Assembly (NCBI GenBank): GCA_033442325.1
Contig: JAWQFM010000031.1
Span: 190,036 to 254,035, forward strand
Source: Salpingoeca rosetta
Taxonomy: Eukaryota; Protista; Choanoflagellata
DNA length: 64,000 nt
Reading direction: 5' to 3'
The translations under genes and the position numbers were made by a program. This document shows, piece by piece, positions 1-63,211 of this stretch. Each line of letters starts with the position of its first letter. The first letter of the stretch is position 1. A model generated the notes under the pieces. The model made no database searches. It was not told where the DNA came from and saw only the letters and a list, made by a program, of their open reading frames with translations.

Positions 1-277
1 GATATCCGACCATCAAGCACTTCAAGCGCGGCGACACAGACGGCACAGACTACAGGGTATGTGTGTGTGTGTACACGTGTGCGTGTGTCTGCATGTGTAT
101 CAGTGTTTTGCTGTGCTGTTAAACACTGGATGTTATATTCGCCCCTTCCTTCTTTTCCCTCACAAGTCCCGCCGCCGCCCTCCTTCCCTCTTCCCGACTT
201 CAATGAATGCACAGGGCGGCCGGTCTGCGGAGAGCTTTGTCAACTTTCTCCAAAACGCAAACAAAGAGGAGCTGTGA
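1..277 (+). CDS. Protein disulfide isomerase / ER thioredoxin-domain protein, 3' end (exons <1-56 and 215-277)
   Basis: Spliced translation YPTIKHFKRGDTDGTDYR|GGRSAESFVNFLQNANKEEL*. Matches the PDI thioredoxin C-terminus (GYPTIK.F...Y.GGR), ends in the ER-retention signal KEEL, and has a GT-AG intron at 57-214. Confidence 0.85.
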   Translation, partial: ISDHQALQARRHRRHRLQGMCVCVHVCVCLHVYQCFAVLLNTGCYIRPFLLFPHKSRRRPPSLFPTSMNAQGGRSAESFVNFLQNANKEEL

Positions 278-698
278 CAACAAACACACACACACGCGCG
301 GGCGCGCGCAAGCAAGCATGATGGCCATACTCCTCGTGCGTTTGTGTAATCATCGTTCAATTCATTTCATTTCACATTGCCAACATCTGTTTCCCAATCA
401 ACCCCTCAACCGACCAGAGAGTAACAAGCCAATTACACCAAGCAAGCAAGCAAGCAGCACGCCACACACACATACATGTTATCACACAACACACACACAC
501 ACACACGCTATCACAATTCAACGTGTCAACAACTCAACAGCCACAACCACATAAACAGACAAACGACAATCACAATGGCAACATCGAGTGAAGCAACCAC
601 CCAAGCCGCAACCCCGACCCAAATAAACAGCGCGCACATCAATCAAACCCAAAACCACCTTCAATCAAGCAAAGCAGAGCAGCACAAAACATGGTCCT

Positions 699-59512: not shown

Positions 59513-60280
59513 CTTGTGTTGCTCGTGCGGTGTGCTGTATGTGCGTGTGTGTTTTGGTGTGTGTGTTGGGTGAGGTTCTCCCACACGTTGCCTCAGTCAA
59601 TCACTCCGTCAGTGCTGCTGCTGTTGGTGGGTTTTTGGTTTCGTGCACGCAACCCAAAACGTGGCCAGGGTGCGCGCTGCTTGGTGGAAGCGGCCGCTGC
59701 TCCGTGCCAGGGGGGTCCCGTTGGGTCTTCGTCGCCGCCCCCTTCCCAGCAACTGCTCCAGTTGAGGCGCAACGTGCGGCACAAGACGTGAATGAATGGT
59801 TCGCGCCAAACCCCATGCAACAACCTCAATCACGGCAAGCGAGATGTCGTGATTGACATGAATGAATGAGAATGAATGAGGTGAATGGCTGAATGGCTGA
59901 ATGAATGACGGAGGAAGGGTGCCGATATCGGATGCGAGGGAAGGGACGGGAGGGAGTGAGCGTCAATAGTGCCGTGGGAGCACTGTTGGCTCGCTTGTGT
60001 TTTGTTTGGTTTGGTTTGGTTTGGTGGCGTGTGTATCTGCCGTCGTCGTGCGTGTATGCATCGAAACAAACAAACACAGCCGTTCGCTCTCGGTTGCATC
60101 GAAACAATCGGTGCTTCGTTTTTTGCTATGGTTTGTGGTGTCGCAATAATATACATTGAATTCAGTTGTAAGACTGAATTAAGTATGCACACCTGAAATC
60201 AGTTTCGCTGACCGCGTTGAAGGAGAGAAGGAGAGAAGACGTGTGCTGCTGCTGAAGCTTGCTTACCACCACCATCCACC

Positions 60281-63211
60281 ATGAGTGTGCTCGCCAAGAT
60301 TGAGGAGATTGAGGCCGAGGTAAGCACGTGTGTGTGTGTGTGTGTGTGTGTGTGTGTGGCAGGTTCATGTTTGAGCAGGCAAAGTGTGTGCAGAGGCGTG
60401 CATTTGGAAGTGGCGCGTCTGTGACACAACGCTGAACCTTGTGCGTCCATGGCTTCAATGCTTTGCAGATGGCCCGCACACAAAAGAACAAGGCCACGGC
60501 CAAGCATCTTGGTCTGCTCAAAGCCCGCCTTGCCAAGCTCAAGCAAGAGCTCATGACATCCAAGACTGGCGGCGGCGGCGGCGGCGAAGGTGTGTGTGTG
60601 TATGTGTATGTGTGTGTGTGTGTGTATGTGTGTGTGTGTGTGTGTGTGTGTGTGTGTGCGTGTGTGTGTTTGTTTGTTTGTTTGCCTGCTTCCTGTTTCT
60701 GTGTTCGTGAGCACACCATGATGTACAGCAGCGGGTTCCTTGCAACCCCCTCCCCGTTTTTCTTCATCTCATGCTCTTCCAACATGTTGCAGGTTTCGAG
60801 GTGTCCAAGACGGGTGATGCCCGCGTCGGCTTTGTCGGTGCGTTTCATACGTGCAAATGCATGTGTGCAAAAGGTTACAAATGCACATCTCTGTTCGTGT
60901 GTCCTTTTTATGTGCACCATTTCCCCCCTTCCTTCGCGCACACTTACACACACATACACACACACACACACACATACACACATGCACACATATACACACA
61001 CACACATGCACAAACACATGCACACTCACTCACTCACACACACTCACACACACACACACACACACACACACACACACACTCTCTCTCTCTCTCTCTCTCT
61101 CTCTCTCTCTCTCTCACCTCACCCTGGTCCCTTCAACAGGGTTCCCCTCTGTGGGAAAGTCGACGCTGCTGAGCAACTTGGCGGGCGTGTACTCGGAGGT
61201 GGCCGCATACGAGTTTACGACCCTGACCACCGTGCCAGGTGTCATTCGCTACAAGGGCGCAAAGGTCCAGCTTCTCGACCTGCCCGGGTGAGTGAATGAG
61301 TGTGTGTGTGTGTGTGTGTGTGTGTGTGTGTGTGTGTGTGTGTGTGTGTGAGTAACGTGCTTTGTGGCACATGGCTGCTACAACGCTGCTGGTGCTGCTG
61401 CCGTTGGTGTTGCGTGACTTGTCCTTGCCAAATTGTGCGCTTGCTTTTGCTGCTTGGTCGTTCGTTGCACTTCCTGCATGGTCGTGTTCTTTCCTGCATG
61501 GTTGTTGGTGAGGTGTGACGACAAGTTCATTCGTGGTCTGCTCACGTGCCATCTGCGCAGTATCATCGAGGGCGCCAAGGACGGCAAAGGTCGCGGTCGC
61601 CAAGTTATTGCCGGTAGGTCGCACACACCACATGCGAGCAGCGACAGCTGAAATACACGTGTGTGCGTGTGTGTGTGTGTGTGTGTGTGTGCCTGTGTGT
61701 GTGAGGACGTGTGTGTGTGTGTGTGTGTGTGCGTGTGTGCGTGTGTGTGTGTGTGTGTGTGTGTGTGTGTGTGTGTGTGTGTGTGCGTGCCTGCCTTGGT
61801 CGCTATCTGTCTCTCGCTACGTGCTCGGTTCCTCTCACCGCCACCAACTGCACCCCTCACCATCACCTTCCACCGTCCCTCTCTGCGACAGTTGCGCGCA
61901 CGTGCAACCTCATCTTCATCTGCTTGGACATTATGAAACCGCTCGGACACAAGCAGATCATCGAGGTGCCCCAGCTGTTACCTGCAAAGGCGTGGTGGTG
62001 TGTGGACGTGCGAATAATTGGTTGTTGTTTGTTTGTGTGTGAGGATGAGTGTGCACGGGCGTGTGACGATGTGTTGCTCACTTGTGTACTTGCACACTCA
62101 CACGCGCTCATACACACTCATACACACACATACACACGCACACACACACACACACACTCACACACCACATCACCGCCATGTGCGAGCAGAAAGAGCTTGA
62201 AGGGTTTGGGATCCGTCTGAACAAACGCCCGCCGCAGATTTCCGTGAAGAAGAAAGAGAAGGGCGGCATCCACATCACGTCGACCGTCCCGCTCACCAAA
62301 CTCGACAACGACACCATCAAGACCATCCTCGGTGCGCGCAGCGGCCGTGGTGGAGTGTGTGGTGGAGTGTGTGGTGGAGTGTGCAGGGGTTCTGCTCATT
62401 TCATCCCCTCACACACGTGTACACACACACACACACAACACATACATACACACATACACACACACATACACATACACACACACATACACACACACACACA
62501 CACATACACATACACACACATACACACACACACACATACACACTACCACCACCACAACCACCGCCACCATCGCCACGGCAGGGGAGTACCGGCTGAACAG
62601 CGTGGACGTGACGTTCAAGGAGGACGCGACGGAGGATGACCTGATTGACGCCATTGAGGGAAACCGCGTGTATGTCCCCGCCATCTACGTGCTAAACAAG
62701 ATTGACCAGATAAGCATTGAGGAGCTGGACATTGTGTCTCGCATTCCGCACTGCGTGCCCATCTCCGCCCACCACAAGTGGAACTTTGACGACCTCTTGC
62801 AGAAGATGTGGGACTACCTCGACCTCAAACGCATGTAAGCAGACACGTAACCTTGGTGCTGTGACAACGTGGGGGGGGGAAGAGGTGTGTGTGTGTGTGT
62901 GTGTGTGTGTGTGTGTGTGTGTCTGCTGTATATGTCACAACTTGCCTTGGTCCTGTTTTCCTGCCGCCCAATGAAGGGCTGCGTTGCACGATGCCTTATT
63001 CACCGCGTTCACACACACACACACACACACACACACACACACACACACACACACACACACACACACACACACAACACACAAAACACAACACAACACGCAA
63101 CACGCAATCAGTGCGCTGGTGTGGGGCTCGTCTGTGAAGCACAACCCGCAGAAGGTCGGCAAGGACCACGTGCTCCACGATGAAGACGTGGTGCAGCTCG
63201 TCAAGAAGTAA
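60281..63211 (+). CDS. DRG1: Developmentally regulated GTP-binding protein 1 (one conserved TGS segment absent; possible extra terminal exon to 63474)
   Basis: [33 protein letters not shown]|[55 protein letters not shown], and [19 protein letters not shown]. Confidence 0.95.

Follow-up and report, generated by a model that had tools for sequence, protein, structure and literature searches.

The window analysed here is a single stretch of 64 kb (G+C 56%) from the choanoflagellate Salpingoeca rosetta. Among the organisms most closely related to animals, this species is the principal laboratory model, and it can be transfected and genome-edited. Our subject is the introns of its genes, in which GT-type repeats (GU in the RNA) lie toward the 5' end and CA-type repeats toward the 3' end. 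GT-type tracts (n = 64, 2654 nucleotides, nt) and CA-type tracts (n = 74, 3589 nt) together occupy about 10% of the window. All remaining dinucleotide repeats sum to a few dozen nt, and an Rfam scan of the window returned no matches. An earlier reading of the same letters, here called the original prediction, had described this order and proposed that most introns might be defined by GU:CA pairing or by repeat-binding proteins.

Genes and intron set

Annotated gene ranges were taken from assembly GCA_000188695.1 (contig GL832985.1), and the annotated gene identities were matched by Pfam on long open reading frames (ORFs). The exon product of 702-2252 on the minus strand (517 residues) is 100% identical to the annotated S. 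rosetta protein PTSG_09711. One large gene was put together from ORFs linked by spliced reads; the other ranges listed are annotated ones.

699-5021, minus strand: metallopeptidase/PPC protein
7426-9450, minus strand: annotated gene
10230-11096, minus strand: annotated gene
from 12011, minus strand: EML protein, with a Pfam EML beta-propeller in the gene
27098-38886, plus strand: one large gene
39406-48803, minus strand: adhesion G-protein-coupled receptor (GPCR) of 1777 residues
49549-52457, minus strand: arabinofuranosidase/ricin-lectin protein (gene K)
52630-55481, plus strand: Sushi/F5-F8 protein (gene L)
56640-59512, minus strand: TPR protein
from 60281, plus strand: DRG-type GTPase

The final set comprises 79 introns (median 250 nt) from about 11 genes on both strands, spanning positions 57-63111. 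Twenty-nine of them, called tier 1, are independently supported: 11 by spliced RNA reads, ten by exact spliced mapping of the annotated proteins P0001 and P0008, and eight by a re-reading of the DRG gene against conserved DRG sequence. The DRG conservation used for this purpose is what we take to be typical of the family, and the Pfam families of the annotated product are consistent with it. The RNA evidence comes from four runs over 34300-40250, two of stranded raw RNA and two of RNA contigs; spliced-read support is restricted to this interval, and the EML, GPCR and DRG introns rest on other evidence. Canonical U2-type GT-AG termini are found in the nine introns that are listed as GT..AG joints in the RNA runs, all on the plus strand:

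34571-34755, 34850-35055, 35114-35346, 35489-35729, 36039-36225, 36716-37051, 37195-37502, 37707-37917 and 38546-38716

Intron 34281-34487 was added on the basis of loose read ends at 34487 that match 34250-34279. Intron 36334-36564 has no joint row of its own; the evidence for it is a contig piece on either side (36225-36328 and 36560-36713), and the sequence was read to set its exact ends.

The remaining 50 introns come from our own hidden Markov model (HMM), which combines 3-periodic coding emissions with donor and acceptor matrices; scoring of ORFs by codon usage alone was too noisy for defining exons. When trained without the RNA-proven gene, the HMM recovered eight of that gene's ten introns exactly and placed the acceptor of the other two correctly. 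It was less exact against the annotated proteins and DRG, and it misplaced about 20-40% of the testable boundaries, by up to 75 nt. Its flaws include the fusion of neighbouring genes and the shift of some donors to the first GT of a tract. Intron 52418-52585 and exons at 5403-6048 were discarded, as they fall outside the annotated gene ranges.

GT repeats early and CA repeats late in introns

G+T content is higher in the 5' half than in the 3' half of 66 of the 79 introns (binomial p = 1.1e-9), with the same direction in 25 of the 29 tier 1 introns (p = 1e-4) and in 41 of the 50 HMM-only ones. Perfect GT repeat covers 2870 nt of the 5' halves and 636 nt of the 3' halves, while perfect CA repeat covers 516 nt of the 5' halves and 1453 nt of the 3' halves. 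Coverage by GT peaks in deciles 2-3 of the intron and coverage by CA in deciles 6-9, before falling in the last decile. At least 20 nt of one repeat type (GT or CA) are present in 65 of the 79 introns (82%), and perfect repeat makes up 28% of intron nucleotides, many tracts being decayed or imperfect. All 14 introns that carry both arms run GT then CA; the order known from fish, AC first and GT last, occurs in none of the 79.

Beyond the perfect microsatellites alone, there is a broad gradient of composition. In a set of 69 introns, G+T starts at 0.74-0.79 over deciles 1-2 and is down to 0.36 by decile 9; along the intron G goes from 0.38 to 0.13 and T from 0.41 to 0.23, while C rises from 0.11-0.14 to 0.41 and A from 0.10 to 0.24. 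The gradient is present even in introns without a perfect repeat, such as 36039-36225 and 38546-38716. Eukaryotic introns are generally G/U-rich after the donor and pyrimidine-rich before the acceptor, and the depletion of G and enrichment of C toward the 3' splice site are like this general bias. In S. rosetta, however, its magnitude is far larger (G+T from 0.75-0.79 to 0.36 in about 250 nt), it is mostly microsatellite-borne, and toward the 3' end it is A and C, not U, that are enriched.

A pattern with GU behind the donor and CA ahead of the acceptor is its own reverse complement, so that on the plus strand introns of either strand should read GT...CA and exons should sit at CA-to-GT transitions. 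The polarity can therefore be tested without gene strands, and strand errors cannot produce it. Around blocks defined by codon usage, without gene models or splice sites, CA repeat prevails on the left (1997 vs 444 nt) and GT repeat on the right (1357 vs 892 nt). Coding sequence lies in 21 of 30 CA-to-GT gaps and in 7 of 30 GT-to-CA gaps (p = 6e-4). In a replicate outside the window, 9.3 kb of the same contig with 17 predicted introns, 13 of the 17 show the same direction (5' vs 3' halves: GT 451 vs 197 nt, CA 74 vs 231 nt). The orientation rule and the gradient are a real and strong observation. No description of such a repeat pattern in the introns of choanoflagellates or S. rosetta was found in the full-text literature searched, though papers outside it may mention it; the matches were confined to general reviews and the report on teleosts discussed below. 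The word intron is absent from the main text of the S. rosetta genome paper, and S. rosetta is among the 65 species of a study on gene architecture and splicing that leaves repeats and pyrimidine tracts unmentioned.

The individual introns referred to below, and one exon, are as follows.

36334-36564, plus strand: RNA-proven two-arm intron, with GT at 36358-36370 (short) and CA at 36475-36541
35489-35729, plus strand: RNA-proven GU-only intron (27 and 15 spliced reads in two runs)
34850-35055, plus strand: RNA-proven CA-only intron (24 and 21 spliced reads), with sense CA at 34934-35001 and no GT arm
32977-33339, plus strand: two-arm intron, with GT at 33011-33052, and CA and CAA at 33149-33338 running into the acceptor ...ACACACAG
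8006-8358, minus strand: strongest two-arm intron, an HMM model within the annotated gene 7426-9450
47798-48141, minus strand: two-arm intron of the adhesion-GPCR gene, an HMM model
15607-15745, minus strand: short two-arm EML intron, with a sense CA tract running into the acceptor ...ACACACACAG
15499-15606, minus strand: EML exon at a plus-strand CA-to-GT transition, with CA at 15361-15467 to its left and GT at 15608-15653 to its right
62835-63111, plus strand: last DRG intron, two-arm, read from DRG conservation, with GT at 62885-62922 and CA at 63010-63080
62332-62581, plus strand: DRG intron, with CA at 62410-62543 and a C/A-only 3' end ...CATCGCCACGGCAG
25564-25882, plus strand: GT-only intron with GT tracts in both halves, an HMM prediction
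51584-51854, minus strand: CA-only annotated intron (exact spliced mapping of P0008), whose sense CA tract (89 nt) adjoins the acceptor ...GCACACACACAG
50533-50713, minus strand: GU-only annotated intron, likewise from the exact mapping of P0008, with a GT tract that has the donor itself as its first unit

These results bear out the original prediction in its descriptive part, namely GU-type repeats after the donor and CA-type repeats before the acceptor in genes of both strands, with exons at CA-to-GT transitions of the plus strand. The EML exon that it had put at about 15500-15607 matches our exon 15499-15606, and our prediction of intron 25564-25882, GT only, is identical to its own. Three further introns stood while their boundaries moved: 36333-36564, which is RNA-proven, was refined to start at 36334; 62835-63110, a two-arm intron, was refined to end at 63111; and 32978-33351, also two-arm, is better placed at 32977-33339, since 33339 is the sole acceptor that preserves the downstream frame. 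The acceptors quoted at 63110, 62580 and 52944 as having almost no pyrimidine tract exist and are T-poor.

Other long simple repeats in the window include (CAA)46 at 14576-14715 and (GTGA)30 at 26486-26606. The first reads (UUG)n within an EML intron, whose 5' half is thus again G+U-rich.

Placement of tracts relative to splice sites bears on how they arose. Tier 1 donors have the form (A/C)(A/C)G followed, across the splice site, by GT(G/A)NG(T/C), with G at +5 in 90%. On the tier 1 donor matrix a GT inside a GT tract scores 4.0; real donors have a median of 6.0 and a minimum of 2.5, and taken over all GT dinucleotides the 95th percentile is 4.5. The distance from donor to GT tract in tier 1 is 0-198 nt and that from CA tract to acceptor 22-122 nt, and there are usually 20-50 nt of non-repeat sequence between the CA tract and the acceptor. 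Intron 36334-36564, for example, has a CA tract that stops 23 nt short of the acceptor, and 35489-35729 is GT-rich from about +22 to +160 and then has a C/A-rich non-repeat 3' end. In several introns, e.g. 32977-33339, 15607-15745 and 51584-51854, the CA tract reaches an acceptor of the form ...ACACAG. The last 40 nt of introns contain C at 0.40, T at 0.25, A at 0.21 and G at 0.15. Where a CA tract lies in the 3' half, T is 0.14 in these 40 nt and nine introns have at most 10% T, a lowering that is partly trivial because the tract fills the measured space. The last 50 nt of intron 62835-63111 are nearly T-free.

As a side observation, the donor consensus GTRNGY, often with C or T at +4 (GTGCGT, GTGTGC, GTACGC), is unlike the GTAAGT or GTGAGT of animals and yeast; tier 1 examples are the donors at 36334, 36716, 37195 and 37707.

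The whole pattern could be a neutral by-product of mutation, in which GT/CA slippage is extreme and tracts nucleate at donor-like or acceptor-like sequence, growing and decaying without function. A repeat share of 28% in the introns, with many decayed or imperfect tracts, would be expected of such a process; both the donor GTRNGY and ...CACAG acceptors look like repeat units, and some tracts begin exactly at the donor or finish at the acceptor. Most tracts in supported introns, however, lie 20-200 nt from the splice site. This lack of contiguity argues against simple slippage seeding from the splice-site consensus, and direct seeding of the tracts from that consensus was set aside as insufficient. 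Furthermore, the gradient exists also in introns without a perfect repeat, a position-blind process cannot alone yield 0 of 79 reversed introns, and slippage alone leaves the orientation of the tracts found after stop codons (below) unexplained. Close inverted repeats (palindromes) are unstable in DNA, and the neutral explanation would have two-arm introns rare for this reason; the depletion of two-arm introns described below fits such instability. On balance, we consider a purely neutral origin doubtful. Transposons with terminal inverted repeats (introner-like elements) were rejected as a source of the tracts, as about 80% of introns are single-arm.

Co-occurrence and folding of the two arms

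Teleosts and lamprey possess (AC)m-(GT)n introns, in which the AC arm lies on the side of the 5' splice site and the GT arm on that of the 3' splice site (Lin et al. 2016, Genome Res 26:12, PMC4691745). The two arms co-occur across fish introns, and such introns make up 0.09-2.3% of the total (PMC4691745). The S. rosetta introns are like these in having complementary GT/AC repeats at opposite ends of nuclear introns (here 14 of 79), two-arm introns with a predicted long bridging helix, and weak pyrimidine tracts at acceptors. They are unlike them in the order, which is GT then CA, with 0 of 79 in the fish order, and in that 82% of introns carry a tract, yet the two types avoid each other. Moreover, S. 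rosetta, as a choanoflagellate, stands outside the animals. As for the U2AF2 independence of teleosts, the one possible sign of it here is the T-poor 3' end of introns with a CA tract. The teleost precedent that the original prediction had invoked thus exists, but with a polarity opposite to that of the introns here, a reversal that it had missed.

By this precedent, the GU-rich 5' part of the intron could pair with the CA-rich 3' part and unite the donor with the acceptor or branch site, so that pairing would define the intron and relax the need for a pyrimidine tract, as in teleosts with the arms swapped. Fourteen of the 79 introns do have both arms in the right order, with none reversed, and T-poor acceptors coincide with CA tracts, although the low T of CA-tract introns is partly trivial, as said above. 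Two-arm introns are, however, a minority: 14 of 79 have both arms of at least 12 nt and 6 of 79 have both of at least 20 nt, while 59 of 79 have a tract of at least 20 nt of one type only. At the threshold of at least 20 nt, GT is present in 46 introns and CA in 25, and both are present in 6 vs 14.6 expected (Fisher p = 5e-5); within tier 1 the two co-occur in 1 intron vs 4.3 expected (p = 0.014).

A deficit of this kind might be an artefact of the HMM, if a false micro-exon split a true two-arm intron, and every GT-to-CA tract pair was inspected for this. Six micro-exons were doubtful; two are real by DRG homology, and the other four were removed to obtain worst-case gene models. With these models, 10 introns have both arms at the threshold of at least 20 nt vs 15.3 expected (p = 0.011), and 19 at that of at least 12 nt vs 22.3 expected, which is not significant. 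When tracts were replaced by 30-nt windows of at least 90% G/U or C/A, the overlap was 14 vs 20.7 expected (p = 4.5e-4). There is no positive association between the GT and CA arms, and probably a deficit, whereas co-occurrence is the key evidence in fish.

The introns also show no preference for their own partner. The best duplex between the halves of an intron averages -53.8 kcal/mol, and that between its 5' half and the 3' halves of other introns -59.6 kcal/mol (permutation P = 0.98), so that own halves pair no better than the halves of different introns. Compared with dinucleotide shuffles, the minimum free energy (MFE) has a mean z of -0.34 over all introns (p = 0.17), i.e. no overall excess stability. 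The 14 two-arm introns fold far below their shuffles (mean z -2.7), and the other 65 have a mean z of +0.18. The strongest of them, 8006-8358, has sense GU in the plus-strand CA of 8288-8360 and sense CA in the plus-strand GT of 8015-8169, with a predicted MFE of -191 kcal/mol, a z of -9 and 91 end-bridging pairs. Of the other two-arm introns, 47798-48141 has an MFE of -166 kcal/mol and a z of -7.5, and 32977-33339 an MFE of -131.8 kcal/mol and a z of -2.7; z is -2.9 for 15607-15745 and -0.7 for the RNA-proven 36334-36564. The DRG intron 62332-62581, with its CA tract, has a z of -3.6.

End-bridging pairs, those between the first and the last 45% of the intron, are nearly doubled relative to shuffles (32.7 vs 18.1, p = 1e-8), and one-arm introns share in this excess. 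Their number is raised because sequence in the 5' part finds few local partners there, and the excess follows directly from the gradient. Structure could still form part of the function of the introns, but the end-bridging excess is not evidence of selection for pairing.

The idea of the original prediction that most introns may be defined by GU:CA pairing is not supported by these data, given arms that are depleted from co-occurring, no cognate advantage and a mean z of -0.34. The comparison with dinucleotide shuffles that it had proposed showed greater stability for the 14 two-arm introns and none in excess for the whole set. GU tracts are also found after terminal exons, where a CA partner is lacking. 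Despite the precedent of fish and lamprey, we therefore judge structure-assisted splicing to be an unlikely cause of the pattern. An arm-swapped form of it that evolved independently of that in vertebrates, in which the gradient would fold nearly every intron into a panhandle and (GU)n:(CA)n helices would be the extremes, is given a similarly small chance. If it held, the splice sites would be brought together, and C/A-only 3' ends could function without a U-rich tract.

Stems that bridge the 5' splice site and the branch point of long yeast introns were reportedly described by Goguel and Rosbash in 1993 and by Rogic et al. in 2008. As in yeast, complementary segments internal to the S. rosetta introns would shorten the effective distance between splicing signals. 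Unlike the yeast stems, which are unique and intron-specific, the complementarity in S. rosetta is generic and confers no cognate advantage. With the same repeats, the opposite order and no co-occurrence, S. rosetta offers a natural contrast to teleosts, one that can help to tell the contribution of pairing from that of each repeat on its own.

GU tracts after stop codons and proposed position-specific signals

GU-rich sequence is not confined to introns. In the 200 nt past the stop codon, G+T is at least 0.63 in 7 of 10 genes, and a sense GT repeat is present in 6 of 10 genes and a sense CA repeat in 1 of 10. Five such tracts directly follow a stop codon:

38887-39010, plus strand: sense GU-rich tract after the stop codon (38884-38886) of the large gene, from sequence and RNA depth
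55482-55654, plus strand: sense GT tracts following the gene L stop codon, with 103 nt of repeat
11947-12010, minus strand: sense GU tract (54 nt) after the EML stop codon
63213-63290: further sense GU-rich tract
7226-7425: further sense GU-rich tract

RNA depth at 38887 drops from 35 to 3. A run of 16 G lies at 38897-38912, following the stop codon that ends at 38886. Because the post-stop tracts lack a CA partner, GU-rich sequence is not tied to one. The GU-rich downstream elements of cleavage and polyadenylation sites are bound by CstF-64. The tracts described here are like these elements in their position right behind the last coding exon, at the point where RNA coverage stops, and unlike them in that internal exons, too, are followed by tracts of this kind. 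It may be that the post-stop tracts are such downstream elements, belonging to very short 3' untranslated regions.

We tentatively favour, at somewhat short of an even chance, a reading in which the two ends of the intron are independent, position-specific signals or constraints acting on very active GT/CA slippage. Going beyond the observed gradient, orientation rule, lack of arm co-occurrence and GU tracts after stop codons, we infer that binding factors would be involved and that selection rather than mutation would set the orientation. Almost every exon, the last one included, is followed by GU-rich sequence. GT repeats, being arrays of near-consensus donor sites, would be plausible landing sites for the U1 small nuclear ribonucleoprotein (snRNP) or for proteins of the TDP-43/CELF kind, and those after stop codons might serve as GU-rich downstream elements in 3' end formation. 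The approximately 100 nt before the acceptor would have to be G-poor and C-rich, with only the CA orientation tolerated or favoured there, and in some introns the CA tract would occupy the place of the pyrimidine tract. Slippage would keep making tracts, and selection on local RNA signals would filter their orientation by position. The two-arm introns (8-18%, about 1 in 6 to 12) would pair into a long end-bridging hairpin as a side effect, possibly a mildly disfavoured one.

In animals, splicing is policed by proteins that read UG and CA dinucleotide repeats (PMC5959245), and UG/CA intronic repeats near splice sites are read by dedicated RNA-binding proteins (PMC4691745, discussion). These repeat-binding regulators keep cryptic exons repressed and strengthen or police the choice of splice sites (PMC5959245; PMC4691745). 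The intron repeats of S. rosetta resemble the sites of TDP-43 (UG), hnRNP L (CA), PTBP (CU) and CELF (UG) in being UG/CA repeats near splice sites, within about 100-200 nt of them as in TDP-43/hnRNP L/CELF-type elements. They differ from the sites in animals, which are scattered and occur in a minority of introns, by being near-universal and ordered by position. Recognition by repeat-binding proteins, which the original prediction had named beside pairing, fits the data better than pairing does and may be correct. If a GU or CA repeat, ordered by position, is present in four of every five introns, the splicing code of S. rosetta would be visibly unlike that of yeast and animals, and, if readers are indeed involved, the roles of UG- and CA-repeat readers (types TDP-43, CELF and hnRNP L) could be followed back to a time before animals arose. 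The rule of CA before and GT after an exon also aids gene prediction in the S. rosetta genome.

Several points weigh against independent signals at the two intron ends. Fifty of the 79 introns are HMM-only, a class in which both ends are right in about 60-80% of testable cases, and the analysis covers a single 64-kb window and about 9 kb beyond it. One-arm introns too are enriched in end-bridging pairs (29.4 vs 17.5, p = 2e-6). No binding factor was identified and no repeat-reader gene lies in the window; no search was made for S. rosetta homologues of TDP-43, CELF or hnRNP L. Finally, sense GT exceeds sense CA in 46 introns and the reverse is true of 30 (p = 0.085), a near strand symmetry by which an RNA-level cause is not proven by the intron data alone.

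This weak difference in intron numbers, and a plus-strand pattern that is identical for genes on both strands, would also suit a feature of DNA or chromatin. The dyad symmetry, with CA to the left and GT to the right of exons on either strand, could then delimit exons or nucleosomes, or the tracts could adopt the Z-DNA form, without involvement of the RNA. The amplitudes of the two arms are not mirrored, however, as GT peaks at 0.43 (decile 2) and CA reaches 0.16, and introns contain 3506 nt of sense GT vs 1969 nt of sense CA. The preponderance of sense GT over sense CA after stop codons (6 vs 1 of 10 genes) likewise depends on the direction of transcription. We know of no mechanism at the DNA level that would yield such a CA/GT pattern at exon borders, and we regard this explanation as very improbable.

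The repeats may also have affected the assembly. In the DRG gene, the exon ending at 62834 (...WDYLDLKR) joins the exon from 63112, and the TGS domain lacks about 42 conserved residues, its YTKPKG... segment; no exon with this segment was found in any frame of 59000-64000, and the TGS match of the annotated DRG product is weak. The loss is either a real truncation or an assembly collapse between the flanking GT and CA tracts. The orientation rule thereby also flags repeat-bounded sites of possible sequence loss in the assembly.

A few minor observations concern the other genes. Exact mapping of PTSG_09711 requires micro-exons of 21 and 14 nt, at 2425-2445 and 2980-2993 on the minus strand. The region 20400-23750 has a weak minus-strand coding signal and several tracts, and may contain either a gene missing from the annotation or the 5' portion of the EML gene. 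In the large gene, C-to-T differences at 35953 (4 of 27 reads) and 37116 (4 of 23) are seen in RNA run X43 only and could reflect a strain allele, error or editing. Many RNA reads and contigs seem to link 35834 to 39489 with 14 extra letters, or to enter unlike sequence; 35814-35834 and 39489-39512 encode a His/Thr/Pro-rich low-complexity peptide (CACCACCAC...), and these joints look like cross-mapping from other genes rather than splicing. The start codons of genes K (52457, minus strand) and L (52630, plus strand) are divergent and 172 nt apart, which makes the sequence between them a candidate compact bidirectional promoter.

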